This document shows positions 2,786-31,417 of a DNA stretch of 64,000 bases, one piece after another. The notes under the pieces are model-generated. The model was given only the letters and a program-made list of their open reading frames with translations. It was not told where the DNA came from and did no database searches. Source of the stretch: Takakia lepidozioides (Eukaryota; Plantae; Bryophyta); assembly GCA_030704615.1 (NCBI GenBank), contig CM060734.1, positions 22,382,001 to 22,446,000 of the forward strand, written 5' to 3'. The stretch's first letter is position 1, and each line of letters begins with the position of its first letter. A program made the translations under genes and the position numbers.

Positions 2786-3039
2786 GTCCGACATGGCGTT
2801 ACTCTGGTATATTCTTGACACATGACTCACATACCGGTTACTCTGCTATATTCATCCGGACAGACACATTGTAGAAATGAGACATCAAATTGTAAACAGT
2901 GGGCCAATTCCGACAGTTATTCAACAGCATGAAACACAATCATACAGAAGTGAGGTACGATGGGTTTATTGATCGGACACGATGTCTCACATTTACCAAC
3001 TGCAGACAAAACTAAGCCCTTCCTCCTTCTACATGGGCT

Positions 3040-9276: not shown

Positions 9277-10849
9277 TTAGGGAATTCCAAAAAGGCCTTG
9301 ATGTGAAATTCATCGCAATGCCCAGTGCCCCAGGAGGGCTGAGGTCCTGGACATTAGCATTCTGTACTATCCTCGAACAAAGCGACGGGCGTGAGCGCCG
9401 TGCCGTAGGTGAGCTGCTGTTAGGACCCATAGTGGTGAGAAGGAACAAGAGGATGAAAGCTGAAAAGGATTGAGAACTACAGAGCTCGGTGGAGGTGGTA
9501 AGGTTTACAGAGAGGGTGGCGGTAAACAGGTCAGCCGACCAAGTTCAAGGTGGCAGGAAGAGAATATGTAGCGAGTTCATGGCGGCAGCTTAGTTGGATG
9601 TGGAGACAGTGGTTATGGAGCACCGTCAACCTGGAGCTCCAATTAAGTTAACCCCTAGACGACGACACGATGAACTCAGATGGATATTGAGTCAAGGATT
9701 TGCTCGTCGATACCAGACCAGCCTGGGTTGTCGTTTACCCATTCCAACGGTGGACCTTCCTCATTTTCTGGGGGTAGATGAATGTGGTAGTCAGGAATGT
9801 ATTTGTAAGGTTCAAATTTCTGGATGATTCAGGGGAGCAAGATAGAGCTAAAGATAGGCAGGTATGAACACTTTTGGGGGTGACCCACCAAAATAGGTCT
9901 CGTCCTTTAAGGGTTAAGGATTAAGATGAAGGCACGATGAAGATCCTAAACATCTGCTAGGGGTAAGGTGGAAAGGAGTGTATAGAACTTTGGGTAGTTG
10001 AGGGATCTGCAGGTAATAATTTTTTGCTTTGAATCTCTTGGGCTACCCTTCGAAGCTGTGTCTCTACCCATACACCTTTCTTGAAAGATTGTCCCACCCT
10101 GAATGATTCCAAGCCAACTTCCCGAAGAACCAAAGAACTATGTGAAGGGGTGGAGTATTGGAGGTGAACATTTGCATCTTTTCAATGGATGGATCATTGA
10201 TGCACATTGAAGTTATTTGTTGATAGGTCACGTCTGATGAAGTGGACAGCTGCTCAGTTGCTAAAGTACACTTTTAAGAGTCCATCTTGAGTACTGAACA
10301 TTCTTGAACGAGTTTTTCACACATTCTGTTTGTTATCTCACATGCTTCTTTGGCCTGTTGATTTTGCCAGACCATCCAGGAGCCAAAAGTAAGAAAGGCT
10401 CTAGATATTGTCGTGCTCAGATTACTTACTGGCTTAACATCACTGATCTAAGGACTGAGGAAGGGCGCACACTGCAGTTTTCTTGTTGACCACCAATGGT
10501 TTATCCTCTCGGGTTGCTCTCACACTGTGACATGTAGGAGGAAATTATGCAATCAAGCTGGCTAACTGATGACGAGAGTCATCTCTCTCCGTTTTTTTTC
10601 ATTTTGTCCCATAAGCTCTTTGAGCTTTCTACAGATGTTATAAAGTACCATTTCATTTCTCCTTGACCAAGTTTTGTCTTTGGTGATGCTTCCGAGGGAG
10701 TAGGGAGTGGAGGAACGTGAGGTTGGGCTTGAGGGGTGGAATGACATGGATGGTGCATATTGCCTACTGATACAGTGGTGGCGACCAGCAAAGGCTTTGC
10801 AAATCAGTCATTGTGAAGAGCATAGCTATGGGTGACTCTCTCATGGTAG

Positions 10850-11750
10850 ATGCTGACGCTGAGAATCCTCTTCACTTTGGAGTTCGAGTAATTAGCCAAA
10901 ACAAAGGATTTCTTCATAAGAAAATTGACGTGTCATGGTTTTAGTCATGGTTAACTAGAATTACCTACTTCTAGTTAATTATGATATTTTGGATATTTAT
11001 ATTTGTATTTTGTGTGTGGGGACTTCATTTGGTCTCACATGCCAAGTGAGGTGTCAAGCCACACTTGGGACATGGGGATGGGTTTTCTCTTTGTGAGGGT
11101 TGAGAAGGCTCATCTTCTTGTAGTGATAAGAGATGAGAGTTGAGGGAAGTGGAAGACAATGGAAACTCTCCAAGCATGAAGCAATCACATTAAGAACAAG
11201 CCCTAGTCCTTCCAAGTGAAATGCACTCTATCACATAGACTAAGTCAAGCCAATGGCACCTTTACTAAAGGAATCCAACCTACAAAGCCCTCAACACACT
11301 CCCTCTCAATACCTAGAGCTTATGGAGGCATTGTGGCATAGCTTTCAGCTAGGATTGTGTGCTTAGAATGTGTATGGACAACGATGTATGTTATGGCACG
11401 ATGCTTAGGTGCACGACAGATGAGATGCAATCCCACCAGAATTGAGGCTGTCAAATGCATATGAAAATGAACTTTAAATTACAATAAATTACAAGTCATC
11501 AAAGGGAAGAGTTGTGGCCTGTCAATTGCATTCATTCCATTTCCCAGAGAAGTTCTTTACAATCCTGCTGTAAGATAATTCCTCTCAGATCAGGTTCTTC
11601 TTCCTGTAGTGTGTAAAAGCATTCATCCACTACTCCGGTCAATCTTGAGACTGAACTGTGTAACGTCTGTGTAACCAAACGCGATTGTGGCACCATCCTC
11701 AAGAAAGTTGGAGGCGTTGCCCATGATAGATGAGGTTGTGATTAGAAACT
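10850..11750. repeat. Dispersed repeat homologous to about 42615-42945, interrupted by the 10931-11418 insertion
   Basis: Shared blocks such as GCTGAGAATCCTC, GAGATGCAATCCCACCAGAATTGAGGCTGTCA and GATTGTGGCACCATCCTCAAGAAAGTTGGAG. Confidence 0.85.
10931..11418 (+). mobile_element. Solo terminal-repeat unit (A'-B') of a diverged relative of the permuted-LTR gypsy family
   Basis: Ends TGTCA...GCACGACA; flanked by GACG/GATG (4-bp TSD with one mismatch); empty site present in the paralogous repeat at about 42690; internal CA|TTGTG junction at 11330/11331; 3' end resembles repeat B. Confidence 0.7.
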
Positions 11751-12934
11751 TAAAGCAGACAAATATTAGTTGGGTCAGTAGTAAATGTGTTTAGAGATAA
11801 GCTTCAAGAGTTTACATTTGGCTCAACATCTGGTTTTGCATTTCACATCTAAGATAGGAAATTTGGAGAAGTAACTAACACAAATCTTTCAAAATATATT
11901 ACCTTCAGGGACCTCTACATCATGCACCATAACTTAGAATGAAGACTGCAGCCATGCCCCATTACTAGGCAAGGATATGATGCTACTACCAAAGCAGTCA
12001 TAGAGATGTTCCAAAGGGTTATAGGGTGTGTTCTGTACATGAGACCAGTTATCAGGCACCTCCTGCCCATTGCCATTGGATCCTAAAGGCTGGCTGGATT
12101 GTTATTTTGGAATATATGTGGCAAAAGTAAAGGCATGCATTTTGTGCCTCCTCAAAAATTACACTGCAGGTGCACACAACCTACTATACACACAGTGGAA
12201 TAAAGAGTCTCAGAAGTCTTACTTGCTTATTGACCTTCAACGACATGAAGTGTTGATTGTTCGAGTGCCCAGACACTTTCCTGCTCATTTTGTCTTCTTT
12301 CTTGATGGAAGCCACCCTGCAAAAATGTATAAGACAAGTTGATGCTCAAACATTTGCGAGAATGATTTGGCAGCCATGGTGGCACCTCATTGACCTCAAA
12401 GAACTTCAGTTACTTGAATGCGCACTAGCTCTTATTGTGAATGAGCTGTCCGTCATTCACATCAATATACGAAACGAGGCGATTTGTTTGTTTGTTTTGT
12501 TTGTTTTGTAGCGTTGAGATGTCCCAAACCGCAAGGCCCCAACCCTGGTGCTTGGTACCGTTGGAAAGCCCTCGATGAGGAGGGGTGCACCGGCTTGGTC
12601 TCACGATTTTTGGACCTACGGTGTGGGAGATGTGGAATTCCAAGTACTTTTGGTCTCTGGATTTCACGAAAAAAGAAAAATGGCTTTCCTGGGGACAATG
12701 ATTGGAGCCTCGACATGAGAAATATGGAGGGGTCGCGATGTAGATCGCTCCACAAGTTGCGGTGAGGAGAGTTGGGACTTAGCCATTTTGGGCTGAGTGC
12801 AGCTACGACGTGAGCCCAGGGGTTTAGTGGAGGAAGAAGCAGGCCCTGTACCCGAGTCCTCTGTTTAGAGAGGGTCCTATTGTCGTGGAAGCAGTTATAG
12901 CGCTTAAAAAAAGAGGTATAGAAAGAATGGAATG

Positions 12935-14300
12935 GTCATTGTGAAATTTACTGAGGTTTTCTTATTGAAGAAGAGGTGAAAAAAAAAAGGTTGGGTGAGT
13001 CATCATGAATCTTACTTAGGGATTCTTGCATGAACAAGAGGCAAGAAAAGTTTGGATGCTCATTGTCAAGCTATCTGTCGTTTCCAGTATTTCATCCATG
13101 GTGGATGGATGATGGATGCATGAAATATTGAAGGAGAGGTTAAAAATAATGAGGATGGGCAAGAACAGGCCCCAAAATATGACCCCTCATTGTGAAACAG
13201 ACAATGGTTTTTGTTAATATAAATGAGGTGAAAATTAAACAGATGGTCATCTTCAAGCTTATTTAGGCTTTGTTTGTGAAGATGTGTAACAAAATGAGCG
13301 GTTTATTGTGGAACTTGTTCAGGTTTGTGTTATTGAAGATGAGGTGAAAAAAAAACACATGGTCATTGTGATTGCTTATTTAGGGTGTCTTTGTGAAGAA
13401 GAGGTAAAAAAAAACATTGAGCTATCCTTGTGAAACTTGTTTAGGATTATGTTATTGAAGAAGAGGTGAAAAAAAAAGTTAAGCTCTATCATTGTCAAAC
13501 TTGTTCAGGTTTCTGTTATTGAAGAAGAGGTGAAAAAAAAAATCAGATGGTCATTATGAATGTTTATTTAGGGTTTGTTTGTGAAGAAGAGGTGAAAAAA
13601 ATATTAGATGGTCATCATGAATGCTTATTTAGGGTTTGTTTGTGAAGAAGAGGTGCAAAAAAAACTTGAGCTCTATCATTGTCAAACTTCTTCAGGTTTC
13701 TGTTATTGAAGAAGAGGTGAAAAAAAAACCAGATGGTCATCATGAATGCTTATTTAGGGAATAAATTAGGGATTGGTGAAGAAGAGGTGAAAAAAAAACT
13801 TGAGCTCTACCATTGTCAAACTTCTTCAGGTTTCTGTTATTGAAAAAGAGGTGAAAAAAACCAGATGGTCATCATGAATGCTTATTTAGGGTTTGTTTGT
13901 GAAGAAGAGGTGAAAAAAATTGAGCTCTATCATTGTCAATCTTGTTCAGGTTTCTGTTAATGAAAAAGAGGTGAATAAAAATCAGATGTCATCATGAATA
14001 AATTAGGGTTTGTTTGTGAAGAAGAGGTGAAAAAAAAACTTGAGCTCTATCATTGTCAAACTTCTTCAGGTTTCTGTTATTGAAGAAGAGGTGAAAAAAA
14101 AATCATATGGTCATCATGAATGCTTATTTAGGGTTTGTTTGTATAGAGGACATGGAAAACAAATGAGCTGTCATTGTGAAACTTGTTCAGGTGCCTGTTA
14201 TTCAAGAAGAAGTGGAAAAAAAAACAAATGGTCATCGTGAAGCTCATTTACGCAATGCTTCTGTAGAGGCCGTGAAAAAATAAAATGAGCTTTCATACTG
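12935..14300. repeat. Tandem satellite of about 60-bp units with alternating (about 120-bp dimeric) organisation
   Basis: GAAGAAGAGGTG(A)n core followed alternately by ATGGTCATCATGAATGCTTATTTAGGGTTTGTTTGT or TTGAGCTCTATCATTGTCAAACTTCTTCAGGTTTCTGTTATT. Confidence 0.95.
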
Positions 14301-14574
14301 ACACTTGTCCATGTTTAACAGGCCCTCGAACAAAAAATGGTTTTTTTTTTTTTTTTTTTTTTTTTGGCCCGGGGGCAATATTGGGGGTGGGGGCAGAAGT
14401 GGTGTGCGTTGACGCACTCAATTTTAGAGGCTCGTTAACCAAACCCGATAAAAAAATAAACTACCTTTCATGACAAGACATCGCCTGCTTGTCTAGATTT
14501 AAGAACTGTGTATACATAATCTACAAACAAGGCAGCCCTTTCCGACATTGCGAAAAATCGCAACATATGCAACA

Positions 14575-14874
14575 CTACTCGATATTGCCAATGTCTCGCT
14601 GTAAAAGTGTCTGTACCTCACCAGGACCTAGTGTGGCCTGGTGAATGATTTGGTCTCTTTTGGGATCACAATACATCATGCGCAAAAAGATGTAGTAAAG
14701 ATGCTTGCAGGGAACCCATTTTCCTCTCTTTCCTAGAGCTTCCTCACGCATGCACACGAAGTCGGGAGAGGTACACCCCGGAAAATTTCCCACCGTCACC
14801 TGATAGGCCCTGTCGTGCAAAATAGACCCAGGACTGCTTGAAAGGCAATCAGACAGACTGTATGATCTGAACAA
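14575..14874 (-). CDS. SWIM zinc-finger domain, paralog of the MULE transposase C-terminus
   Basis: YQVTVGNFPGCTSPDF...VPCKHLYYIF...CDPKRDQIIHQATL matches the 30590-30831 (+) translation. Confidence 0.6.
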   Translation of the reverse strand: MFRSYSLSDCLSSSPGSILHDRAYQVTVGNFPGCTSPDFVCMREEALGKRGKWVPCKHLYYIFLRMMYCDPKRDQIIHQATLGPGEVQTLLQRDIGNIE

Positions 14875-17462
14875 CAGTGAATGACGATACCGTCAGTCAC
14901 CCACTCATTGTGCGGTAAACCCTTAACAGAGGAGTAGAAAGCAAATCACCGTTGTTTCATGGTGATGGTCGGTAGCGACAATCCATTTCTGGGACATTCC
15001 ACTCAATCTCTACACAGATCTTCAACAATGAAATGTAAGTTAGAGAAAACTTACTGGCGCCCTTGAAATTGGATCCCCTTCTGCAGCTTTCCCCTTCCCT
15101 CTCACATCTGCTGGAATTTATGTCTGCTCTAGGGTTTCTGGACCTTCTCCCGGTTTAGCGTTCCTCATACTTCCACCTCCTTCAGTTTCCCTGCGAGTCA
15201 TCTCGGCATCCACAGGCTGGTTTCCAACGCGCAATGTTATCGCCGACTGTGTCACAGCCACTGCCTCAGTCTCGGTCTGCTCTTGTGAATCAATCTCCGC
15301 GTTCCTCGGCCCTGTGTTCTCCAACAAACGACGCCTCGTCATTTGCTCTTTTGCTCTGCGTCTCTCTCTAAGGGAAGTAAAATAAAGAGACTTTATTCTC
15401 TTTCGTATTGTAGAAGGAACCCTCTCCAGCTTGACTACCACTCTCCCTCTAAGCGCGAAAAGTAGAAAAACGAAGTGACTCCCGATTTCTTGCGGGATTG
15501 CGTGCGTTGTTGCTTGTCTCTAGAAGCATCGGATTCCCTCTCGCGTAACCGTTACACGTAGTCGTTCCCTTAATAGTGCACATGCCAGCAATTAGTGTAT
15601 AGCTGTTCGTATTCAATTATCGATGTCTGACGTGTGTCGCCCAAAATAAACGGCGTGTTCTTTATTAGAATGGTTTCAATATTTAAAAATAACAACGAAT
15701 CCCAGAAATCTTGGCGCACAGTCTTAGACAAATATATGTAAATGAACAAGAGTTTGATAACAAATTTTGGGATATCATACACATTCATCCTTGTTAGCCA
15801 ACCCCACGTTCGTTTCACATTTTGAACTTTCCAGGTACGCATGATCATTGGTAGTAGTATAAAGATACATTTACTTAATCTGCAATCCCACCCTCAGATC
15901 CTGTGGCATGCTTCCAGGAAGTCGGCTTGTTATTGAGTTTATTGATGAGGTTTTGATTAACGGTTTAATAGCTGCCGACATTGCTCCTAGGGATACTCTG
16001 ACCACTGGGCCCACAAGAAAAGTAATTAAAATGGACGGCTGCATATCTGGAAGGAATAACAGAATATGCACAGTCGTCGTCTGAGCTTCCTCCGCCATAT
16101 TCTCTGCTCATTCTTCAACTGTGTTCTGGAGACATCAGTAAACCGATTTACACTGAAGGTCTGTGATAGCAAGGTATCAACGTACGCGAGGAAGGAAGAT
16201 GGCTTCCTTTGAAGCGGAGTTCTTCTCTGACGACAAACCAGTGCCGTTCTCCCAGGAAGTCCTTGACAATGGATTTGCAATTGTTCTGGAACATGTCTTG
16301 GCTACCCGTTTTCAGCTTCAGAATGGCTCCATCTTTTTGGAGAAAGAGGTGTACGATTTGAAAGGGAAGTTGTTGAAATACTCTTTCCAAAACCGTGATA
16401 AGACGGCTCATGTCAGCCAGTGGAGAGTGCGCCCTGGTCGATACAGAGTACTTGGAGAGCCTCGACGAAAGTCCCTTGGGTCATATGTGACGCCCAGGAC
16501 TGCTGCTTCGGTCGTTGAAGACAAGAGGGAGGTGGTGGTGAAAAAAGAACAGACGTCCTCCACTCCAATCGTTGAGCTTTCGGATTCGTCCGATGATGAC
16601 ATAAGTGAAATTCCAAATCCAGTCCTTCCTATTGTGGTTGGAGAAGCTGATGAAGAAGAGATTTGTAGTGTCATTCCAAAACTACAGGCGATGGGAGGAA
16701 TGGCTGGATTCAAAAGTGAGTTGCGAGGAATTGATTAGGAATCTTTGAAGCAGGTGCTTGTGAAGTTCTTGCCAGAGACTTTTGATGGCGATATCCTATT
16801 CGAGCTGCCTCCTCCTCCGCGAGTTGGAGGTATAACAATCATGATGCATGGAATGGACAAGAAACACGACGGGCACCCGTGGTGCAGAACAAAAACATCC
16901 AATATTCAGAATGATGACAAGCTTGTTTTCAGGAGAACAGTTTGCAATGGACACCTTAGGTGTGATAATTTGAATTGCAGACACTTTCTTCAGTCTGGGG
17001 TTCATAATCAAAGCGAATGGGAGGGTCTGGCGGAAAATCCATTTCAGCCTGGGACTGCCCCACCACCGGCAAACACTTTCGTCTGCAAATTCTGCAAACT
17101 TGTGCCATCCTGCTTGGCGCTCTGCGGAGCAAGAATGTACTATGTTGTCCACCGTTTGAAAACAATGACAAGAGCTTGTGTGCATTTCGGATTCCATAAC
17201 CATCCTGTCTCGAAGGGGGATTACAGGGAGAGTGTTGAGACAGTATCGAGGTTGATGAAACAGGAGTTTGGGAGAAACCCATCCGCAACAACATCTACAA
17301 TTGCTCTTGGCGCAAGCAAGTCCTTCTTGGAAAGCCATATTTTGAGTGAAGGGGATTCTGTGGGGACTAAACTTGACGGTGCAGCATTGGACCTGGTCAT
17401 GGATCATTTCTCCACTTTGAGTTCACCTAACATTCGGCATCAGAGCAATGCATTAAGAATGG

Positions 17463-17789
17463 TGTCAAGTTATTTTACCACTAGTGTGAAACTAGCTAGG
17501 AAATAGCTATCTTTTACATATTGACATTTGGGATTGGCCCAAGTGTCAATCCAGGCGTCAAGGCAGATTTAGGCCCTGGAGTGGTTATCTTCACGGCAAG
17601 CGCGGGAGGCTCATCTTTCTTGAGTTGAGCCTCACCGCGCCTAGCTATGGCGCCGTAGTGTGGATTCCCCATGGCGTGGGGTGCACTTGGCTTGACTTGT
17701 ATTTGAGTGATGAGGTTATATATGCATGAGTTTATGCTTCAGCTTTGTGAGCTCGCATGAGCTCGTGCTTGTATTCTTCTTCTTTATCA
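17463..17789 (+). repeat. Terminal repeat A1
   Basis: Near-identical to 28085-28410 and 58250-58576; TG...CA ends. Confidence 0.95.
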
Positions 17790-17805
17790 CTCGAGAAAGA
17801 TGAGC
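17789..17805 (+). other. Putative self-priming primer binding site
   Basis: ACTCGAGAAAGATGAGC begins at the last base of A1 and is complementary to GCTCATCTTTCT(C/T)GAGT at 17609-17625; there is no TGG tRNA-type PBS. Confidence 0.6.
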
Positions 17806-19329
17806 TCGTATCTATGAGTGCTAGATACGAGTTAGTTGTAGCACTTGTGGTTTTTGCTTGAGAATGAGAGAAACCAAGTTGTTATGCAAGGAGCACCGTG
17901 GAGCTCTTGGTTGTTAGAAGCGGAGGCGATGTGGGTTACGAGGTGGTAAACCTTGGCATTCGATCTTCAGCTTCAGAGATGAAAGCACCATACTGTAGGT
18001 AATTCCAGAGCACCTTGATGGTTTCAGATTGTGTACATGCATGAGCAAGCACGATTGGGAAGAGGACCAGTCAAGAGCAGGTTATAGTGGCTTTGGTGGC
18101 AAAGCTGAGAACTGGACTTGGGAATGCGAGCTGTCATTGTGTGAAGGATTGCAAGACCAAGCGAAAGGGCTGATTTGGCTTGGGGCAAATCAGTGCACTT
18201 TGTGGAGTATGGTGAGATGGGTTTTTCAATCTCGAGCTTCAGCATTGAGAGGGCTCTTGTCATGGCAGAGCAGCAGGGCTGGAACAGGAGCTAAGAGGTG
18301 CGGCAAGGCATGGAATGTGCACCTAGGGTTTCAGAGCTTGGAAGAAGAGCTCTTGCACCACAAGAGAAGTGTCTTGTGGCTGGAAATGTAAGCCTTAGGG
18401 TTTCAGGAGCTTGGCAAAGGCTATGGAGTGCTTAGTCTTGTCTTAGAGAGCATCAAGGAGCCAAGGAGCCAAGATAGGGGGCTGATATCTCTTGTGTGAA
18501 GAGGTTGCATGTGTGGAGCATGTATTCAACTCATTGAAGCTTCCATCTTCAAGCTTGGAGGGCAAGCAAGGAAGTGGGAAGGGCTAACTTCCCTTATGTG
18601 AGGGCAATGCATGTGTGGAGCATGCTATCAGCCTGGTGAAGGCTTGCACTTTTAGGTGTGGGAGTGCAAGGAATGAAGGAAGGGGCTGGTTTCCCTGTAG
18701 GGCATGTAGAGCATGCTTTCAGCCTGCTGAAGCTTGTATTTTTCAGGTTTGTGGGTGCAAGAAATGAAGCAAAGGAGCTGATTCTCTTATGGTGAGAGTG
18801 GGGCATTTGTGGAGCATGCCTTCAGCCCATTGAGGCTCTTGTTTTCAAGCCTTAGAGAGCTAGAACGGAAGGTCTAGGGCTGGTTTCTACTTGGAGTGAA
18901 AGAACAGCACTTGTAGGGCCTATGTGAGTTGGGGTTTCAACTTCAAGCTTGAAGGAGCGCAACTCTTGAAGCAACAGGTGTAGAGGGCTGGAATAGGCTC
19001 TAAGACAGATGCTATGGCCAATGAGGGGAGTGCTTGAATGAGTGCTCACAAGGGCTGGGGAACCAGCAGGGCTTGGTTGTTTGCCATTGAGTTTAGTGGC
19101 GTGTTTTGGGAGGCTAAGTGAGAAAGAAGGCTTGGTTTGTGGCACCACCTCATGGCTTAGGGCTACTATGGTGGTGTGTGGGAGCCGAAAGAGCAAGGAT
19201 ACCTTGCTGATTCCTTCCTCACAGCCACCATAGCTCGGTGGAAAGAACCTAGAGTCCAAGAGACAAACCCTAGCTTTGGCGTGGCTAAACCCTTGGAGAA
19301 ATGGCTAAACTGCCAGAGAACAGGCCATG

Positions 19330-20170
19330 TGTGGGGGCTGTGACAGGCTGTGGCAAGCTGGACGGGCTGTGACGGGCTGTGTCAGGCTGTGGCGAGCTGT
19401 GACGGGGCCGTGCCGAGGCCTTTGAGGCTGTATGGGCTTGACAGGCTGTGCCCTGTGCCCTGTGTACTGTGACGGGCTGTGTCAGGCTGTGGGCTGTGAA
19501 GGGCTGTGTGCTGCCCTGTGACGGGCCTGTGGTGTGGGCCTGCCTGTGCCTTTGGGCTGTGATGTGAGGGCTGTGTGCCTGAGGCCTTAGGCTGTGACGG
19601 GCTGTGAGGCAGGCTGTGAAGGCTGTGCTGACAGGCTGTGCCCTGGGGGGTGGGGCTGTGAGGGGCTGTGACAGGCCGTGCCCATGGCCTTTGGGGCTGT
19701 GACGGCTGGCAGGCCGTGCCTGAGGCCTTTGTGGGGGGCTGTGACGGGCTGTGAACTGAGGGCTGCTGTGAAGAAGAGGGCTGTGACAGGCCGTGCCTGA
19801 GGCCTTTGAGGCTGTGGGGCTGTGATGGGCTGTGACAGGCTGTGACGGGCTGTGGGGTGCCTGGCCATGTGACAGGCCTGTGTGTGACCTGTGACTAGGC
19901 CTGTGGGCTGCCTTTGGGCTGTGAGGGCTGTGAGGGCTGTGACAGGCCGTGCCTGAGGCCTTTGGGGCTGCTGTGAGGGGCTGTGATGGGGTGTGACGGG
20001 CTGTGATGTGACAGGCTGTGCCTGTTTGTGTGACTGTGAGGGCTGTGACAGGCAGGCTGTGACCTGTGAGGGGCTGTGATGTGCTGGCCTGTGGGACTGT
20101 GCTGTGACCAGTGAGCTGTGTGGGCCTGTGCTGGTCTGTGGTTGTTGACCTGTGGATGGCCTGTGCTGAC
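19330..20170. repeat. Low-complexity (GGCTGTGAC)n-type array in the retrotransposon leader
   Basis: Dozens of GGCTGTG/GGCTGTGACG variants; a shorter remnant lies at 60105-60222 in copy 2. Confidence 0.95.
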
Positions 20171-20369
20171 TCTGGAGGCACTGGTTAACTGGCATGTGGT
20201 CTGGAAGGCCGAATTTTGAAGCTCGTGGAGGGCGGTTTGAGGAGTATCTTCATGATATTCCCATGGTCATGCAAGTTCAGGTGTAGGCTATGTTAGGAAC
20301 TTAGTATTCCAAACCATAAGCCGCAACAGGTTCTCTACCCGGTTACCTTGTGGAGAGGGGGTTAGGGAC

Positions 20370-23300
20370 ATGTTCATGACCGTTGAGTCAACACGGAGGT
20401 GCCACTAGTTGCTGGGGACAGTGCCGGTTCGAGCACTAGCGATACTAGTGGGTACACGAGACGAGGTGTGCGGTTTAGGCCACCTTCACCTCCTGTGTCT
20501 TCTACGGAAGGTTCTGATTCGGATTGTGAATCAGGAGGACTCATACCGGCGGTGCAAGTTGTTTCTTTGCCATTGTTGTGGGACACAATGGAGGAGATGT
20601 ATGGAGCTACCAAGGGGCCACGAGGTACTCTGGGCGGTGGGCACCATCGAGTTGGATGATTTTATCCAAGAGTTTGATAGTTGGTGTGATTTGCAGCAAA
20701 TGCGCAATCCACAACTATTTACGCCTTCATGGCATGGAAAGGGCTGTTTCAGCACCTTGAGGGCCCGCCTATGGATGATTACCATGAGTTCAGGCGGGGG
20801 CATGAGGTTGAGATCGAGGAGTGGAGGATGTACTGGTCACCCGACTATGTCTCCATCACTAGGGGCACTAGAGCCACGAGGGCAGTGGCTACACCTGCCG
20901 CTGCACCGCAGCTTCAGCAAGTAGCAGTGGGACTGGTGGTACAGTAGCTACGTCCACCCAAGCCACTACCGCACCAGCACTAGCACCCGTGCCTGCCTTC
21001 AACCCTGTTTGTGGAGTTCTTCGAAGAGTTGAGAGGGAACTACCAAGGGGTGAGGACAGAGAAGTTGCGGAGCTTGCAAGAGTTCCAACGGAAGCCGACC
21101 GAGAGCTTGAGGGAGGCTTTCACTCGCATGAGGCGCTTGATAAATGTAACCCAAGGGTTACGGAAGCTCAGGCAGTCCAATTCTGGTATGGGATATTGGA
21201 CAAGGAGCTGAGGAGAAGGGTGCGGGATGCAACTCTCCTACAAGCGGCCCAACCCACCTTAGCAAATGTGTTTTTGCTGGCAGAGCGGATAGAGCTCAAC
21301 ATGGTGGAGGAACGAGTGGTCATGGTGGGATTTGCTAAGGAGACACCACGGGGTAGTGGTGCTCCTAGCCAACCACTACCTCAACGTGCTCAAGGCAACA
21401 AGGGGCTCAGGTGAAGCTCAGGGAAGGGCAGAGAGACCTCAGATGCAGGGGTCTCTCCCTTCATTTGCTGGCCAACAACGGGCGGATGTGGTGTGCTGGA
21501 CATGTGGAGGACCCCATGTCAGAAGGATTGCCAGAGGGAGGCAAAGGGCCGGCACATGCACAGCCTGCACAGTTGCAGTGTGGGCATTGTGGCAAACACG
21601 GGCATGGAGAGGCCAGTGTTATGGTTTGCATCCTGAGTTGCGCCCAGGCCAGTTCCAAGGGAACAATGGTGGCCGGGGCGAGGTGGAGCAGCCCAGAGAG
21701 GACGAGGTGGCCAGCCACGAGGTGCAGGCCAAGGGCAAGCTCAACGTGGCCAAGGACGCGGAGGTCAGGTGTTGACCAAGGCATGGCCAACCGGCTTCAG
21801 CAGCTAGAGCAGAGGCTCGCTGCCATGGCTACAGCTCAGGTGGTACCGGCTCTAAGGCCGGATGGTCCACCTCCTGCTCCTGAGGGAGGAGATATGGGAG
21901 GCATGGGATTCATGTGTGGAGCAGCACTACCACTAGTGCAGGTGGAGTCTGCTGCAGCCGTGACTCGAGGAGCAGCACGAGTTCCTGAGCCACGGGTGCA
22001 GAGGTGGAGTTGGATCCACAGCGTGGGGAGGCAAGCCGTCAGGCTAGGCTTCCTCAGTCATTCACATTGGCGGAGACAGTGTCGACGCCATCCATGGCAC
22101 CTAGTTCTCGCCCGACTGTTACCGAGCGGAGGTTACTATGCCATTGGGGAGAGCTACACGGGTAGCACCACTACCTAGTGTTGCCAAGGCTACGGCAGCT
22201 AGTGTGCTGCTAGGAGCGGCCACATCTGTGTGCCAGGCTCATTGTTCTCGACCATGATTGCGACGCCGGGGGTAAGACCAGCTGAGGTGTTCAGGCTGGC
22301 AGCTACACTCTGAGAGTGGGGAGGTTACTTCATCTTCTGCGGAGATAGTGGGGTGTAGTGCCGGAGGGATCCTCGGATTTGAGGGTCAAGACTGCCACGG
22401 CGGCGCCATGGCAAGCTGCAGCTGCCAGGTTGATGGAGCTGCCAGCTAGGCCAGCCATTGAGCGCGCCATGGTGACACCTGGAGTTGTCATGTTAGACAA
22501 CCAGGATGGCATTTTCTGTTTGAGTGGACCGGCAGGCAAGAGGTACCGGCCACTGCGAGTCTTGTTGGACTCGGGAGCTCAGCCACTGATGCTGGGCAGA
22601 GCTGCTATTGCAGGCTTGGGCCTCACGGAGGCGGATATGGAGCCTTGTCCTTTCCAGATACAGACGTCTCTGGGAGGATCGGAGCAGGCTCGGGGCATGA
22701 CACGGCTGAGTTGGCTATCAGACTACGGCCGGATCACCCTACAGATGGCTCAGTGATGCGAGCCAAGGCCATTGTGACAGACGCAGTCTCATACGATGTC
22801 CTGGTTGGTGGGGCAGTGTTGTACCCCATGGGCTTCACCCTGGATTTTTGGGAGGAGTCAGCTTCCTATAGGCCTGCATGGCAGTCAGGGAGGGCCGGCG
22901 TGTGCAGCTCCCTGTGACGTTCATAGGAGGAGTTGCGGTTGCCCAGCGAGGCAAGATGCCGACACTAGCAGCATTCACAGCGGCAGTGAGTTGGCCTAGA
23001 GAGTTGCTTGAGGGCAATGCTCATTCAGAGGATGTACCACCTCCGGGAGAGCAGGATGACATGTATGGTATGGCGGAGTTGCCTACCATGGTTGCTCAGA
23101 CTCCATTGTGGGGCACGAGCAAGGATTTGCAGCGGGATGCTGATCGACGGGTGCAACAAGCCCTGGGTGGAGGCTTTTGTACCGTCAGGAGAGGAGGAGA
23201 GTGTGGGGATTGCACCAGGACCACCTCAATTGTCTCCATTGGACACCACACCTATTGTGTGGCAGTCTCCGGATGAAGGCATTTGTCTTCTGGACTTGTT

Positions 23301-26300
23301 TGGCGGGATCAGCACCGGATTGGCTGCTGTGTTACAGGCAGGTGTACGAGTTCGGCGTTACCTGTATGTGGAGAGGGATGAGACTGCACGACGCGTTTCA
23401 CTTCGCCATGTTGCTCAGTTGGTGCAGCGGTACCCTGAGTTGTTGTCGGTGTCTGCAATTCGTGGATATCAGCAGCCTTGCCAGCAGACATTTCGTTGCT
23501 GGGGGCGCAGATTTGGAGCGGGTTGGCTCCATTGATCTGGTAGTGGCAGGTTGGCCCTGCCAAGGGCATTCATCAGCCGGGCATGGCAATGGATTGCGAG
23601 ACTCGAGGTCGGGTCTGTTTTGGGAGATGGTGCGGGTTTTGCGCCACTTGCAGCTTCATCAAGCTGTATCTCCAGCATACATCTTGGAGAATGTGCCACT
23701 GATGGGCGATTCTCGGGCCAGGTGATGGCCAGTGTGCATCAAGTCCGGTCGTGGCTTGGGTCAGCAGTGTTGCTAGATGCAGCTACAGTGGGGTCACGGG
23801 CTCATCGTCCACGGCTATGGTGGACTAACTGATGCCACCCGCACTGCTCAAGCGTGCATTTGATGGGGTGCAGCGGCCAGCACATCTCACAGTGGATAAC
23901 ATTCTGGACACAGGGAGGCAGTCTCAACGTGTGAGACACGATGACCGTTCGCCTTTGGCAGTGGTCAACAAGGTGGGTCAACCACGAGCAGCATTACCTA
24001 CACTGCAGCTTCCCAGGATCGCATGCTTTCCGGGATAGTGGACCTGGCCTCCTGTGGGATGCTCAGTTGCAGCAGTTAGTGGAGCCTAATGCTGACGAGC
24101 GTGCGGGCAATGGGTTTTACCACTGGTACCACGGCGGTGTCGTCTCTTTCTGAGGCATCACGTCGTCAAGTGTTGGGGCAAGCAATGGATCTCAATTGCT
24201 TGACCTGGATTATCAGCTTGGCTCTAGCTGAGCAACGCAGAGTGCGGAATACACTTCCCTCAATGGTCTCTCTGCCTACCGAGACGGTACAGGCAGTGAG
24301 TGGGGGCGAGCATGTGAGGACCACGGGGTGCATGCATCCATGGCACACGTGGGAGGTGCTCGAGGTTCAGAGAGGTTGGCAGCCAAGGCGCTGTGATGGA
24401 TGAGGTTGGGGATTCTTCTCGGTTGAGGAGGTCCTCAAGGATGAGATGGGGCAGGATGAGCCTTGTCATTGACTGAGCAGGTAGGGAGTACTGCTCAAGA
24501 GGTTGCAGCATAGCAACCACGGGACGCGTCCTCTACCTCTAAGCCCACTGGACTTAAGGTTGTAGTTACGGAGGACAATTGGGAGCCTGACATTGGACCC
24601 ATTGTCACCGGAGGAGAGAGACGACGTATACGGCGGTTCCTGAGGGCTTACAGGAATTGCTTTGCCTTCAGTTTGAAGGACTTGGGAGCACTGAAGGGTC
24701 AAGAGATCCGTATTGAGTTGGCCACTGACACGCCAATCTTTCGGAGACCCTATAGATACAGTGACATGGAGAGGTCTTTGATTCAGATGAGGACTCAAGA
24801 TCTCTGGGAGGCAGGTTTGGTGGAGCTCTCTGGTGGAGAGTATGCTTCAGCCACAGTGATGCCAGCCAAGAAGGATGTCTATGGCAATTGGACGGAGAGA
24901 CGTATGTGCGGTGATTACCGGCCTGTAAATCGTCAGACCAAGTCCGATAAGTATGCCATGCCAACACCAGAGGAGATCTTTGATGCCATCGGGCATGCTA
25001 AGGCCTTTAGCACTTTGGATTTACGATCCGGATATCACCAGTTGCCAATCAAGGAGGCGGACAAGCAGAAGACGGCATTCTGGGGATCAATGAGCACGGC
25101 AAGGATTGCCTATATCAGTGGCGGTTCTTACCATTTGGGCTTAAGAATGCTCCTGCAGAGTTTCAGAGAGTCATGGATAGGATTCTAGCAGGGGTGGACT
25201 TTGCTCGGTGCTACATAGATGACATCATCATCTTTAGTGTTACGATGGAGGAGCATGAGAGACACCTTCAGGTGGTATTGGAGCGCTTGAGAGCGCACGG
25301 ATTGAAGTTGCATCCGGGGAAGTGCAAGTTTTTCCACAACCAGATTGAGTATCTGGGTCACATGATATATCCTGGAGGATTGGGGGTACAGCAGACTAAG
25401 GTAGAGGCCATTGCACAAATTCCACGCCCCACGGATGTGAGCCGAGTTCGAGCTTTCATGGGGTTGGCAAACTATTATAGACGGTTTGTCAAGGGATTTA
25501 GTACCATTGCAAAGGCTCTAACCAAGCTGACCAAGGTGACCAGGAGTGGCAGTGGGAAGATGAGCAGGAACGAGCTTTTCAAGAGCTCAAGGCGAGGTTG
25601 ACCTCGGCGCCTATCTTGAGACGACCTATCAGGGGGCGTCCCTTTCAGCTGCATACGGATTGGAGCATGCTGGGGCTTGGAGCGGTGCTCACACAGGTGG
25701 ATGATGAGGGAAGAGAGTTCGTAGTGGCTTACGCTAGCCGCTCGAACAACGCTGCAGAGGCTAAGTACAGCTCATATGAGGGAGAGTGCTTAGCTGCAGT
25801 GTGGGCCGTGGCACACTTCAGGTGCTATCTATACGGCAATCTTTTCACCCTTGTCACGGATCACCAGCCACTCAAGTGGTTGATGGAGTCAGACAAGCTT
25901 ACGGGGAAGCTTGCACGGTGGGCACTTATACTCCAGGAGTATGACTTTCAGGTTGTGCATCGACCGGGTTTGGTCAATCGGGATGCGGATGGATTGAGTC
26001 GCAATCCATGCATGAGCCAGCAGGATGACACTGGAGCTCGGTGGCATGGTGAGACGGACGAGGAGATGGTGCCGGGATGGCACGCATCTGCATTTTGTGT
26101 ATCTTGGCATCGGGAGGTCAGATTGGACCTACAACAGGATGACTGTAGACGGAGTGTCTGAGGACCCTGAGGCTAGTGATGAGCTAGGTGGTGCCAGAGA
26201 TATACATGAGGATTCGGCTGTGTTGGACTACCTCCGCACGGGAGACACGGCAGCCATTGTGACTGCCAGGGAGAGGGATCGGATCCTGCAACGAGCCAAG

Positions 26301-27639
26301 AGGTTCAAGTGGGAGGGGATACACCTACTTCGAGTGTGGGAGGATGGTCGGGTGAGGATTGTGCCTCACCCCACACAGCGTGCACGGTTAGTGCGGCATG
26401 CCCATGAGGAGTTTGGGGCATTTTGGAGTGCGACGCACTCACAGTTTACTGCAGGGCAGTATTGGTGGCGTGGTATGCATACAGAGGTGCAACAGTTTGT
26501 GGCTAGGTGCATGGTGTGTGACAGGGTGCGTGCTTCATTCAACGCCCCTACACCACAGTTGCATCCTTTACCTATCATGGATTGGGCTACAGGTGGAGTC
26601 TTGACTTCGCAGACCGTTGCCACTGACTATGCGCCACCACAGATATGTGTTGGTGATGGTGGAGCACTTCTCCAAGTGGATTGAGTTGGTTCCATTGCCT
26701 GACAAGGCTAGTGAGGGGGCTGCGTATGCATTCTTGGATCGTGTGCTTAGCCGATTTGGTGCTCCAGCTGAGGTACTCACGGACCAAGGGAGAGAGTTCT
26801 TGGGGGAGTTTCAGGCTTTGTGATAAAGCCTTGATAGACCACCGCACCACTTCTCGGGATCATCCTGAGGCCGATGGCTTAGCAGAGAGAGTTGTTCAGA
26901 CGGTGAAGAGGGGTTTGCGCAAGTATGGCTTGCAGAAGGGACACCTAGGAGATTGGGATCTTCAGGTTCCTTGGTTAGCCATGGGCTACAGGTTCAGCAA
27001 ACAAGCATCACTTGCCTCCTTCTCACCATATTTCCTTCTCTTTGGCCGAGAGCCGGATTTGCCTGCAGCCATTCGTAGGGACACTGCTCAAGTCCTTAAC
27101 CTTGACGATCCGGACGTGTGGGTACGTGCATGTGATCAGCGTGCAGAGTTGTTCAAGAAAGTCATGCCCATGGCTTTTGAGAACCTTGCCATTGCACAGC
27201 ACCGTGATACGTTGAGGTATGCCACTATACGTGGTGGAGGATATCGTCCTGGGGTTCGGAGGTTTAGCCCTGGTGACTATGTTTATTTGCAGCAGACTGC
27301 TCCTACGACTCTGGATGTTACTGCAGGGCGTGTTATTCTGAGGGTTCGAGAGGTGTTGCCCTCAGGGGTCCTGATCTTAGAGGGTCGGGATGGCATGACT
27401 TGGAAAGACCATGTGCGTAATTGTGCGCCATGTCACCTTCCCAATGTCGATGGCAGAGTTGACCCAAACTTGGCAGTGGTACCTGCAGGTTTGAGGTGCA
27501 TGCTCTGTGGGTCTGCCAAAGGGGCAGCCACCATGCTGGTGTGTGATCGTGCTCAAGGGGTTGGCATATGGGATGCTTGACACCACCTCTTGAGAAGGTT
27601 CCTGACGGAGATTGGTTGTGTCCACACTGCTTGGGATAG
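20370..27639 (+). CDS. Gag-Pol polyprotein of copy 1 (many 1-2 nt frameshifts): gag with two Zn knuckles, aspartic protease, C5-MTase, RT, RNase H, integrase, PHD
   Basis: CWTCGGPH and [10 protein letters not shown]; LLDSGAQ (Asp at 22568); [16 protein letters not shown] and YIDD (25212); LHTDWS..YASR..TDHQPL; HAH..GH..CMVC; WSLDF, TDQG and LAERVV; stop TAG at 27637-27639. Start position is approximate. Confidence 0.9.
23278..24210 (+). other. DNMT3-like C5 cytosine DNA methyltransferase domain within pol (copy 1)
   Basis: LDLFGGI (motif I), YVERD (II), AGWPCQGHS (IV, Cys at 23558), ILENV (VI, 23687), [10 protein letters not shown] (VIII), ERxRAMGF (IX), [10 protein letters not shown] (X). 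Confidence 0.92.
27497..27630 (+). other. PHD finger at the integrase C-terminus
   Basis: After one 1-nt frameshift correction: [38 protein letters not shown], a C4HC3 pattern. Confidence 0.9.
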
Positions 27640-27887
27640 TGGCAGTGGACATGACTGGAGGCAGCTAACAAGACATGGGAGGCCAAGCTCATAGGAGTCA
27701 ATACATGAGATCCCAAGCTCAAGTTCACAGGTTGCAAGACGGCGACTAACGATGGGGCAACTCTTGCACCGGCCTCTTGATCTATCGAGTTTGAGTGTAG
27801 TAGGGATAGTGGTGGAGGACTTAGTGAGGCTATGGTCACTATCACATCTTGTGGCTACCTGGACTTAGAGGGACCTAAGCACCAGCT

Positions 27888-27894
27888 AGGGGGG
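27888..27894 (+). other. Putative polypurine tract
   Basis: AGGGGGG lies 3 nt upstream of the start of B1. Confidence 0.55.
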
Positions 27895-27897
27895 CGA

Positions 27898-28599
27898 TTG
27901 TGTGGACTAGTGACTGCCATAGTGGGCAGCGTAGTGGCAGCCTAGTGACTGACTAGTTGTAGCCTAGTGGTTGGACTAGTGGACTAGTGGTAGACTAGTG
28001 GTATACTAGTGTGTGGTGTGCACATGTGTTGTGTGGTTTTGGACAGCGATGTAGTTGTGTAGCGATATGTATGCGCACGACAGCTGTCAAGTTATTTTAC
28101 CACTAGTGAAACTAGCTAGGAAATAGCTAGCTTTTTACATATTGACATTTGGGATTGGCCCAAGTGTCAATCCAGGGGTCAAGGCAGATTTAGGCCCTGG
28201 AGTGGTTATCTTCACGGCAAGCGCGGGAGGCTCATCTTTCTCGAGTTGAGCCTCACCGCGCCTAGCTATGGCGCCGTAGTGTGGATTCCCCATGGCGTGG
28301 GGTGCACTTGGCTTGACTTGTATTTGAGTGATGAGGTTATATATGCATGAGTTTATGCTTCAGCTTTGTGAGCTCGCATGAGCTCGTGCTTGTATTCTTC
28401 TTCTTTATCATTGTGTGGACTAGTGACTGCCATAGTGGGCAGCGTAGTGGCAGCCTAGTGACTGACTAGTTGTAGCCTAGTGGTTGGACTAGTGGCTGGA
28501 CTAGTGGTAGACTAGTGGTATACTAGTGTGTGGTGTGCACATGTGTTGTGTGGTTTTGGACAGCGATGTAGTTGTGTAGCGATATGTATGCGCACGACA
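27898..28599 (+). repeat. 3' terminal block: B1 (27898-28082), GC, A2 (28085-28410), B2 (28411-28599)
   Basis: B1 and B2 are identical except for a 4-bp indel; A2 matches A1; the B1/A2 junction is the palindrome GACAGCTGTC. Confidence 0.95.
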
Positions 28600-31417
28600 A
28601 TGGGCTCTAATATCAGAGGCTACATAGACAACATTTTGGAGTTGAAACGAGTGAGCAAGTACGATTACATCCAAGACAATGTATTCCCAGGTCAAGGTGC
28701 CATCAAAGTTTTTCTTTTCAAAATGTCGACTGTTGGGGAGGGCAGCGGGGTTAGCCTCGTGAAGCGGATGCAGAAGACTGGGGACTTGCAGAACTGTTTT
28801 CTTATGTTTGATCATGTGAAACGAGTGAAGGATTAGACGACAATGGCTTGTCATGTCTACGATCTAGTGTACCGACGAGTTATGACAATTGCAGTTTGTG
28901 ACATGCAATCCAAGGATACGGAATCCCAGAAGCTCATGTGGAATTCCCTGATACGTGTCATGGGCTGCCATCTCCAAATTTCGCAGGTTTCATGGCGGAT
29001 AGTGCTCAAGCAAATTTCAATGTTGTTCGTATTGTCTTCGGATCGGGCGACCCAAAAGTGCCAATGCGAGGAAGAGAACGTACATGTCTATTCCATTGGA
29101 CACAATCTCTGGAAAAACGTACAAGTCGGACATCAAACCAGAGATGCAGACTCAGCACCGTAAATTGTGCAAAGAGTACAAAGATGCTAGAACAATGAAG
29201 GAAGCGGACACTTTGTTCCAGACAATTCGTGCCTGGTGGTTCTCTTCTGAAGCTGCATCACTTGAGAGTATGAGAGCATTGGAAGATTGGCTGGCGTTTT
29301 GGCACTTCCGGTATAGACAGTGGGGAGCAGCCATGGCAGTGGTACGAGGCTTATATTTCTTGCTTTATTCATACATTTACTTTCCATTTTATTGTCTCAT
29401 CATTTTCTTTGTGTTGTTTTATGTTCACTGTTTTGAAGTGTGGTTCTCTACTTTGCAGAACATGTCCATTGAGGAAATGGCGGACATGCCATCTTGCAAT
29501 TTGGCAGAAACTGTGCACAACGCATGGTTGCAGCAGTCTGGGAAACGAGGTTGGGATTTGTATGTGGCAACAACAAATGATTTGATATGTGCCTTGCAAC
29601 AACAAACCCGATACCGTGATTTCTTGCGAGGTGGGGTTGGTGGAGGTGGAGTGTTCAATTCCCTCTTACAGGAGCCGAATCTCCCCTCCCCCTTCAAGAT
29701 GTGGAACTCTAGAAACAAGTGGCGTTCCCTGGGCATACATGCTCACCGCCCGTGCTATCTTGATTGGATCCCCAGATCTGTTTGCAGCACGCAACATCAA
29801 CTCCCATTTGTCCGGACCCTGGTTCAGATTCCGATTCACACAGGGCTTCTCGAAGCCTCGTGTTCCCTTGCATGACAGCTCCATGTCCGGAACCTCCATT
29901 GTGGAGGAACCTCCAACACGACGGCAAGCTCCAGCATCAAACAGTGCCACTGAAATGGTGCAGGAGAGAAACAACCCCCTTGATGTGCTTGAGTCCATAT
30001 GCCCCGACCACGTTTGGCACATAGAACGCACAAGTGTAGGGTCTCGTGTGAAATGTATAGCGATCAGGGCAACTAATTTCGAGAAGTGCACTTCATCAAT
30101 ATCCAGAGGTGGTGCCCGAACTCCTGCTCCGACTTTCACGGGTTTGATGCGTCCATACGGTCAACCAGAAGCCAAGAACCACAAGTTATGGTTCTGCACA
30201 GATGATTGTGCCAAATGTGTGCATGGAACTGTGCGTCCTTCCATAGTGATGAAGTCATTTCCTCCAACCGTTTGGCCCGTGAAGGTGGGAACACATCTCA
30301 GATTTTAGGAGATTGAAATGCTGGAGGAGGCAGGCTTTTCCCTTGCGAGACAACCCCAACTCCATGCATGTGCTACTACTTCTGCGTCCTCCCGGGTCCC
30401 CCGACAAATCCTGACTTGTGGCCAACCAAACGAGATGGAAAGCTCGTTCGGCGTTTCCTTCCAACCGCTGAACACTTTGGCAAAGTGGAGTCCGCAAGAA
30501 TGCTCCAAGCTCGTGTTGGAAGCACCACGGAAGTACCCGATCCAGGATATGGTCGGGTATTCACAATCATCACTTCCACATCTGCTGTTCATGACAGGAC
30601 CTACGACATCACGGTTTCCAATTCCCCCCCAATTGCACATGTCTGATTTTGTGAATATGCTATCAACCAGTTTTGGGCAAGAGAGGTAAATTCATACCCT
30701 GCAAACATTTGTATTTCATATTTTTGAAGGAGATGGTTTGCGATCCCAAACGTGACAACTTCATTCACCAGGCCACTATGAGTTTCAACGAGGTCGATAC
30801 TCTATTGCAGCGGGATACAACACATGGGTAGCATCAACTATGCAATGTGGTATGTGGACGACCATGATTTAAAATGTGTAATTCACATCAATTCGTCGGC
30901 GGTGCAATGATATGGCCTCCAATTATACTGAGTGAGCTCTGAGTGGCAACTTTTAAAAGCACATTTGTCATTGCACCGTTCGAAGGCTACATGTCTTGCT
31001 GTCGCTATGCACTACAATCATCTTTTGAAGATGATCCTAACTCTCATTGTTATTTGAGGAGGGAGGAAGGTCTTCCCGTGGCAGCCTCTATGGTGCACAC
31101 TTTGTGAGGATATTTTCTCGTCCTCGTAATTGTAAAAGTGAAACAAGCATTTGTAATTGCACAATGTTGGATGCTACAATTGTAGGCCTCATGGTAGTCT
31201 TGATTCTATTTAGGCAAGATTCCCTGCATTAATTCCACGGTCATAGGACCATCCTCGGTTATAGGCGGCGCATGTTAATGCTGACGTGGCAGATGACGGA
31301 CAGTGCCACGTCATCATTTGCCGCCACATCAGCATGCTGACATGACGGTCACGCCACGTCAGTGTGGGTGCACGCTCACGCCACGTCACTCCTGCGTGAG
31401 CGTATGCTCGCGCGCTC

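Follow-up and report, generated by a model that had tools for sequence, protein, structure and literature searches.

Permuted terminal repeats in a bryophyte Gypsy retrotransposon family: possible integration from end-joined cDNA opened within the repeat

For forty years the textbook integration substrate of retroviruses and long terminal repeat (LTR) retrotransposons has been a linear complementary DNA (cDNA), and circular forms have been seen as by-products. Other arrangements are found in the split-direct-repeat elements PAT, Ngaro and TOC1, which carry a tyrosine recombinase gene and insert without duplicating their target, and in IS3, IS30 and IS21, whose ends adjoin one another with a 2-3 bp spacer on a circle or tandem intermediate, where a DDE enzyme cuts both ends. 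Here we describe a retrotransposon of the moss Takakia lepidozioides that may be compared with all of these. It occupies positions 17463-28599 of a 64,000-nucleotide stretch (contig CM060734.1 of assembly GCA_030704615.1, positions 22,382,001 to 22,446,000 of the forward strand), referred to below as the window. The element belongs to a Ty3/Gypsy-type family that has a DDE integrase and lacks a tyrosine recombinase.

The closest published observations are of two kinds. The integrases of prototype foamy virus (PFV) and HIV-1 cleave palindromic LTR-LTR junctions into 3'-processed ends (PMC1180852, PMC1905944). In Klebsormidium nitens, the element KnitGypsy-Dnmt3 was described by de Mendoza et al. 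2018 (PMC5890265, Fig. 4c legend) as having Gypsy domains but DIRS-like rather than LTR repeats; this remark occupies one sentence and is accompanied by no mechanism or analysis. A 2026 preprint names streptophyte Gypsy-DNMT3 elements and does not discuss their repeats. For the bryophyte family we propose that the inserted form is a circular permutation of the reverse-transcription product, and that integrase opens end-joined, probably circular, DNA at a palindrome located inside the repeat. We put the probability of this reading at roughly 0.6.

Repeats, ends and reverse-transcription signals

Repeat finding and BLAST within the window place the components of the element in the order A1-internal-B1-GC-A2-B2, all on the plus strand, and reproduce the coordinates of the A...B-GC-A-B layout given in an original prediction made from the DNA letters alone. 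A1, the lone 5' terminal repeat, extends from 17463 to 17788 and starts with TGTCAAG. The second A, A2 (28085-28409), is 98.2% identical to it (BLAST E of 1e-161). B1 (27897-28082) ends in CGCACGACA, and B2 (28410-28599), which is 97.9% identical to B1 (E of 1e-91) with one 4-bp indel as the sole difference, ends in CACGACA at the right end of the element. The outer ends, TGTCAAG...CACGACA, are flanked by ATGG on the left (17459-17462), matching ATGG on the right (28600-28603); the TGTC...GACA termini and their 4-bp duplication are thus both found where they had been predicted. The element does not possess two identical terminal LTRs. Only A is present at its 5' end, and a single B-GC-A, the only full one in the integrated element and completed by A2, lies towards the 3' end, with an additional B after it. 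The same lack of identical terminal LTRs is seen in four species. Between B1 and A2 lies an invariant GC spacer (28083-28084), which forms the center of a palindrome, GACA-GC-TGTC (28079-28088, with no strand assigned). At this palindrome the two ends predicted to be recognized by integrase, TGTCA... and ...CGACA, lie back to back, inside the repeat defined by the reverse-transcription signals described below.

Related loci were gathered around homologous integrase or methyltransferase open reading frames (ORFs), and A and B were mapped in each. This sample, obtained through protein anchors, consists of about a dozen independent loci, which are given L numbers here. The tail, polypurine tract-B-GC-A-B, is present in Marchantia polymorpha (L002, L004, L015 and L017; L003 and L004 are the same locus), in Sphagnum fallax (L020) and in a contig from ENA (L005). 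In Calypogeia fissa (L018) the tail carries one further GC-A-B unit (B-GC-A-B-GC-A-B, 15454-16429) with identical joints and an intact AGGT duplication, and is either a product of unequal recombination or an insertion from a three-repeat intermediate. Four loci end after the first B and therefore have the form A-internal-B: L001 (1701-11423), L016 (4905-17257), L006 (to 11292) and L010 (to 1501).

Perfect 4-bp duplications flank all six of the complete elements that have both ends in view. These are ATGG in the window, CCGG in L015 and ATCT in L020, all with the standard tail, AGGT in L018 with its extra unit, and CCCC in L001 and GATT in L016, which are A-internal-B. In possessing TG...CA termini (TGTC...GACA) together with a short duplication of fixed length, these six elements are like other members of Ty3/Gypsy. 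L017, which has an N gap in its tail, was left out of this count. L016 was counted with caution; 8 kb of this locus (9211-17258) is 100% identical to L015 and it contains an exact 1000-bp duplication (4905/5905) that includes flanking DNA, both of which probably reflect errors in the 2018 M. polymorpha assembly.

All nine 5' ends examined begin with A and have no B before it, so that a conventional B-GC-A was found at none of the nine. The 5' ends of L002, L004 and L005 are outside the DNA covered, the DNA of L010 begins inside the integrase gene, and no 5' end was found within 10 kb for L006. Two other copies in the window present only their 5' ends, with their 3' ends falling outside it. Copy 2 (58250-64000, plus strand) consists of A alone (98% identical) followed by the primer-binding site, and runs past the window end. 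Copy 3 (57821-58249, plus strand) is an older 5' fragment in which A, 89% identical, is followed by the primer-binding site and leader. Copy 2 is nested in the leader of copy 3 at 58249/58250, about 130 bp past the primer-binding site of the latter. Both begin at the same TGTCAAG base as A1 with no B upstream, and the terminus is reproducible, as had been claimed. The mirror form, A|B-GC-A-internal-B, was found in no case, as against eight forms with the extra sequence in the tail. The 10-mer GACAGCTGTC is present at every B/A junction (L004, L005, L015, L017, L018 twice, L020, L014 and L021), and about 0.4 occurrences would be expected by chance over all the DNA examined. The original prediction had looked for shared termini, tail and 4-bp duplications in other copies, and at least four species proved to have independent copies with these features. 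The conventional copies, or the one-off tandem insertion or misassembly, that it had named as evidence against itself were not found; instead the same tail recurs across species.

Alignment of the liverwort and moss elements identified three conserved blocks within repeats that are otherwise diverged. The first is a stretch of 40 nt that ends in AGGGGGGCG and immediately precedes B, the second comprises the final ~45 nt of B, and the third is ACAGCTGTCA. In the window, the first of these is a 3' cis block (27857-27896), near-invariant between liverwort and moss elements, which ends in a G-rich polypurine tract (27888-27896) that adjoins B1. A sequence of 12-17 nt that starts with ACT directly follows A in every element. 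In the window this primer-binding site is ACTCGAGAAAGATGAGC (17789-17805), located directly after U5 and kept in all three copies. The primer-binding site is the reverse complement of a motif situated 110-180 nt into A, this motif is always followed by YGAGCC, and the complementarity always stops exactly at the U5 boundary. Exact complementarity over 12-17 nt was found in eight of nine 5' ends, with one mismatch in the first window copy and in L016. The 17-nt self-primer motif of A1 (17609-17625) carries one C-to-T change and is followed by the conserved TGAGCC, and the motif is intact in A2 (28230-28246) and at 57967-57983 and 58396-58412. All five differences between A1 and A2 are within the first 158 nt, a region that comprises the U3 part together with the primer motif, and the 168 nt of R-U5 have none. 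One of the five is the C-to-T change, which occurs at a CpG and weakens the primer motif of A1.

Between four lineages the primer motif and the primer-binding site show compensatory changes. The respective sequences are ...TCTCGAGT and ACTCGAGA... in Takakia, AGTTCTTCGAGT and ACTCGAAGAACT in Marchantia, AGTTCTCTAAGT and ACTTAGAGAACT in Calypogeia, and ...GTTCTTTGAGT and ACTCAAAGAAC... in Sphagnum. This covariation reads as the signature of self-priming of the Tf1 type and not of priming by a tRNA. The original prediction had placed a PBS-like site after A1, and this position stands; the site is not tRNA-like, however, being complementary to a stretch within A itself. Because a primer-binding site of the self-priming type follows directly, the end of U5 is placed at the last base of A, and the repeat defined by reverse transcription is therefore B-GC-A. 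This agrees with the repeat originally proposed, with the polypurine tract adjoining B and the primer-binding site adjoining A. On these signals U3 would comprise B and the first third of A, and R-U5 the remainder of A. B1 would then be the 5' part of U3, while A1 would contain the 3' part of U3 followed by R and U5. Another short block, GGCTTGACT, is present in the R-U5 of A (17689-17697, 28310-28318, 58046-58054 and 58476-58484 in the window, and also in L001, L002, L015 and L020). This block and the YGAGCC that follows the primer motif are kept from liverworts to Sphagnum and may act in cis as signals for cleavage of the primer or for polyadenylation.

At 28409-28410, A2 passes directly into B2, and the last base of U5 is fused to the first base past the polypurine tract. 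In other words, the base that precedes the primer-binding site is joined to the base that follows the polypurine tract, with nothing gained or lost, and these two positions are where the minus- and plus-strand strong-stop DNAs are predicted to have their 5' ends. The exact joint was read in the window, in L015, L020 and L005 and at both joints of L018; in this last, Calypogeia, locus the assignment is unambiguous because the boundary bases differ. We interpret the A|B joint as the result of blunt joining of complete linear cDNA, that is, as the mark of a 2-LTR junction. Within a given element, A1 and A2, and likewise B1 and B2, share variants that are missing from other copies of the same subfamily. 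Both pairs are therefore regenerated at each transposition, as LTRs are, and the idea that B1 and B2 were merely inherited from a master copy was rejected on these grounds.

The reach of this architecture beyond bryophytes is only hinted at. The clade of Gypsy elements with a PHD finger on the integrase is large (531 clusters at E < 1e-30 in a representative search) and includes Haematococcus. In Haematococcus lacustris (L021) a polypurine tract, a B of ~42 bp, GC and A are found in a nested mosaic, with no visible joint. A scan of metagenome contigs with the junction 19-mer returned four matches; three are chance bacterial matches and one, L014, looks like a relative, on a contig of only 1.2 kb. 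Viral contigs scanned with the integrase yielded no relatives, and L019, a distant PHD-integrase relative, was set aside on account of its short contig. L021 also contains, within an integrase ORF and in two duplicated segments (22613-22690 and 26289-26366), a unit of ~80 bp made of two inverted B ends (TGTCGCG...CGCGACA), which may have arisen as a by-product when the element integrated into itself, or may represent a very small non-autonomous derivative.

A proposed route of integration and its alternatives

In the scheme that we favor, the RNA would span from the R in A1 to the R in A2. Its 5' part would be cut after the motif ...GAGT and would prime the minus strand on the complementary primer-binding site, as in Tf1. 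Ordinary strand transfers would then give a linear cDNA, [B-GC-A]-internal-[B-GC-A], and the joining of its blunt ends, in a 2-LTR circle or an equivalent form, would create the A|B joint. In the upstream repeat, the DDE integrase would nick each strand of the palindrome after CA, which would amount to two 3'-processing reactions carried out 2 nt apart. The product would be a linear A-internal-B-GC-A|B with recessed CA-3'OH ends and 5'-GC overhangs, a normal substrate for concerted strand transfer, which would insert with a 4-bp stagger and lose its GC overhangs. Nicking after CA followed by concerted transfer would thus account for both the 4-bp duplication and the absence of the GC. We infer the circular intermediate and the cleavage of the palindrome from the arrangement of the inserted copies; this cleavage is chemically plausible because the PFV and HIV-1 integrases cut palindromic LTR-LTR junctions, as noted above. 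Opening at the upstream palindrome would give the only product that retains a 3' R and is thus able to replicate again. The A-internal-B copies cannot supply a 3' R, and may stem from deletion or from another intermediate.

Several observations weigh against this scheme. A symmetric 2-LTR circle possesses two identical palindromes and predicts that the mirror product should arise equally often, yet eight and zero were found, and if both products were equally likely the odds of this ratio would be about 0.004. Mirror copies would be dead on arrival and should not be selected against, and the ratio therefore implies that the choice of palindrome is directed. As a speculation, the bias may be kinetic, in that the upstream repeat would become duplex long before the downstream one and integrase would engage it first. 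The original prediction is thus supported in part, by the recurrence of its termini, of the GC between the repeats, of the tail and of the 4-bp duplications; the random opening of a symmetric circle would not account for the observed ratio. In addition, there are the A-internal-B copies (L001, L016, L006 and L010) and the copy with two extra units (L018). These deviant tails could be explained by later unequal recombination, by cutting of both palindromes or by one-repeat or multi-repeat intermediates. The RNA fold predicted for R-U5 and the primer-binding site is strong (z = -7.7), and at minimum energy it pairs the primer-binding site with a different segment of U5 and not with the primer motif. 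Further, the copy in the window is itself dead, with many frameshifts, our dozen or so loci are not a genome census, and the transcript ends, the cDNA and the circle are all deduced from DNA.

The same permuted repeat and integrase sites might instead operate in the absence of a covalently closed circle. Integrase could cut the upstream palindrome on linear or incomplete cDNA, with host end-joining connecting the start of B to the end of A before or after strand transfer, or reverse transcriptase could make the A|B joint by end-to-end template switching. The 8:0 bias would then be natural, since at an early stage the upstream repeat alone is duplex. The precision of the joints in all lineages would fit protected or templated joining, and if both palindromes were cut on the linear cDNA, A-internal-B copies would result directly. 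If joining followed strand transfer, such a route would leave a chromosome break for repair, and no documented precedent was found for internal cleavage 100-190 bp from a DNA end, whereas the cleavage of circle junctions does have one (PMC1180852). We regard a route with no closed circle, the main alternative, as unlikely, while giving it appreciable weight. A mechanism like that of DIRS, PAT and Ngaro, in which circular cDNA would be inserted by site-specific recombination at the B/A junction with a recombinase that acts in trans or has escaped recognition, is suggested by the order A1-internal-B1-A2-B2, which is the split-direct-repeat layout of tyrosine-recombinase elements, and by the description of the Klebsormidium repeats as DIRS-like by de Mendoza et al. 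2018 (PMC5890265). This mechanism would have to accommodate six elements that are flanked by perfect 4-bp duplications whose sequences are unrelated, as well as conserved TG...CA termini and an intact, conserved DDE integrase. Moreover, there is no shared crossover core, because the GC spacer is missing at the integrated ends. Neither the window copy nor L005 yielded a tyrosine recombinase in any frame; no match of the Phage_integrase type was obtained with ORFs of at least 100 aa on both strands of the former or with the ORFs of the latter. Taken together, these facts make recombinase-mediated insertion very improbable.

The window contains a single complete copy, tandem repeats are readily misassembled, and problems of assembly are evident in L016 and L017, all of which would be compatible with a tail that arose as a secondary accident, be it a solo repeat next to the element, a local duplication or an error of assembly. 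Such an accident is scarcely credible when at least seven independent loci, from at least four species and in different assemblies, share this architecture together with the invariant GC and the exact joint. The duplications flank the whole A...B unit, none surrounds A2-B2, and concerted evolution is seen between the two As and between the two Bs of an element. A conventional element with a true repeat A-B (TGTC...GACA), of which the 5' repeat lost B and the 3' end gained B, would equally account for the TG...CA termini and the target duplication. Such an element would require a primer-binding site after B and a polypurine tract before A, neither of which is present; in every lineage the polypurine tract adjoins B and the primer-binding site adjoins A, and A stands alone at nine of nine 5' ends. 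We give practically no credence to this last explanation.

A broader version of the favored scheme, in which integrase opens a permuted, end-joined product, would hold that the integrase sites moved to the middle of the LTR in an ancient lineage with DDE integrase, found in mosses, liverworts and possibly charophyte or chlorophyte algae, and that the joining of cDNA ends became obligatory before integration. We hold this view tentatively, its chances being somewhat short of even. Work on foamy virus and HIV suggested that integrase can reopen circles. If the scheme is true, this lineage would be the first natural example of an LTR-LTR-joined form that serves as the obligatory precursor of integration and not as a dead end, and it would link LTR elements mechanistically with DIRS-like elements and with the circle-junction transposition of IS elements. 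Insertions with a fossil LTR-LTR joint and integrase sites inside the LTR would offer a natural and genetically tractable test, and M. polymorpha carries copies. There are also practical implications. LTR-finding software assumes identical terminal repeats and therefore mis-annotates or misses such elements, and the dating of insertions by divergence between 5' and 3' LTRs needs to be adapted for permuted elements.

Coding content and neighboring sequences

The coding regions of the window element are all on the plus strand. A long untranslated leader (17806-20870) is followed by a gag region fragmented by frameshifts (20872-22180, detected by tblastn with the gag-region ORF of L005) and by an aspartic protease (PR; 22430-22890), identified from a weak Pfam Asp_protease_2 match and by tblastn to the L005 ORF that encodes the protease and the DNMT3-like methyltransferase. 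A frameshift-broken C5 cytosine methyltransferase of the DNMT3-like type occupies 23260-24240 (Pfam DNA_methylase, E = 2e-12). Reverse transcriptase (RT) and RNase H are at 24559-26095 (Pfam RVT_1, RT_RNaseH and RT_RNaseH_2; tblastn), and the DDE integrase (IN) is at 26358-27630, with an H2C2 zinc domain (Pfam Integrase_H2C2), an rve core and a C-terminal PHD finger (27480-27630). The rve core was identified by eye at 26605-26820 and resumes past a frameshift near 26815; homologues carry both rve and PHD. The Pfam matches span 22358-27577 in the order PR-RT-RNase H-IN. In copy 2 the protease-methyltransferase region is in a single frame (61857-63692).

The ENA contig L005 represents an intact relative, with a gag that has a zinc knuckle (zf-CCHC), a protease-methyltransferase of 715 aa, an RT-RNase H of 574 aa and an integrase of 439 aa (H2C2, rve and a C-terminal PHD finger). 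Its methyltransferase-bearing and integrase-bearing regions are at 1470-3614 and 5696-7012. Together with the Pfam matches in the window, this gives the domain order and the zinc-knuckle gag of Ty3/Gypsy, and the two sets of ORFs agree with the earlier claim of a DDE integrase with no visible recombinase. The nearest named proteins are from Calypogeia fissa, Marchantia polymorpha and Sphagnum, and among solved structures DNMT3A/3B are nearest to the L005 methyltransferase. The combination of a DNMT3-like methyltransferase with a PHD finger, instead of a chromodomain, suggests from the sequences that the family may methylate itself and be guided to its targets by chromatin. It bears on the interplay between transposons and host methylation in early land plants.

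The leader contains a G-rich, degenerate tandem array (~19285-20200) of GGGCTGTGA-like units, which is ~1.37 kb shorter in copy 2 (around 59740-60400). This difference in leader length shifts the spacing between the window element and copy 2 from 40785 to about 39410. When the element and one ATGG are deleted in silico, the host reading frame is open across the junction (...NALRMGSNIRGY...). The original prediction had recognized this restoration of the frame and had called the host a MULE; the restoration stands, and the identity drew no support from the searches, in which the host ORF gave no Pfam matches and no named homologues, the homologues found being unnamed. A pair of 108-nt inverted repeats that are 74% complementary (14633-14740 and 30669-30776) flanks the interrupted ORF; these may be the terminal inverted repeats of a DNA transposon of ~5 kb. 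Just inside its left inverted repeat is a tandem array (13378-14254) of eight copies of a ~120-130 bp unit, 60-98% identical. Elsewhere in the window, a pair of 126-nt direct repeats (42486-42611 and 42971-43096, 99% identical and spaced by 485 bp) was considered as a second permuted element and rejected; there is no palindrome, polypurine tract or TG/CA context at these repeats.

Comparison with known systems

The bryophyte element is apparently a variant of a kind that has barely been described, with a mechanism undescribed in the literature searched, which left most subscription journals and Repbase outside. The novelty claimed in the original prediction thus holds for the mechanism, for which no prior account was found, and not wholly for the layout, DIRS-like repeats having already been noted for KnitGypsy-Dnmt3 (PMC5890265). 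That element and the bryophyte family both have a DNMT3-type methyltransferase inside the Gypsy Pol, placed between PR and RT in the bryophyte family, and both have DIRS-like repeats, the Klebsormidium side being known here by published description only. The bryophyte family differs in its hosts and in the PHD finger on its integrase.

The order A1-internal-B1-A2-B2 is shared with PAT, Ngaro and TOC1, as is the B/A junction as the apparent site of opening of a joined or circular cDNA. The bryophyte family departs from these elements in its enzyme, a DDE integrase, in its TG...CA ends, in the loss of a 2-nt spacer when it inserts and in its 4-bp duplications. Of the features that characterize DIRS elements, then, the layout is present, while a recombinase in place of a DDE integrase is not, and insertion is not free of duplication (six of six elements are duplicated). 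In its priming signals the family is like Tf1 and sushi, where the primer-binding site also complements the element's own R near the 5' end and not a tRNA, and stops at the U5 boundary. It differs from them in the 12-17 nt length of the complementarity and in the conserved YGAGCC that follows the motif.

The cleavage of retroviral 2-LTR junctions offers the nearest chemical likeness, in that integrase cleaves a CA...TG palindrome much as a restriction enzyme would and produces 3'-processed, integration-competent ends (PMC1180852, PMC1905944, PMC4372172). In retroviruses the palindrome arises by the joining of LTR ends, as a side pathway, whereas in the bryophyte family it is built into each repeat. 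Here the joined cDNA ends would form a non-palindromic joint that is retained in the insertion, and the route appears to be obligatory. With IS3, IS30 and IS21, which are prokaryotic DNA transposons that do not use reverse transcription, the likeness is one of logic and not of ancestry.

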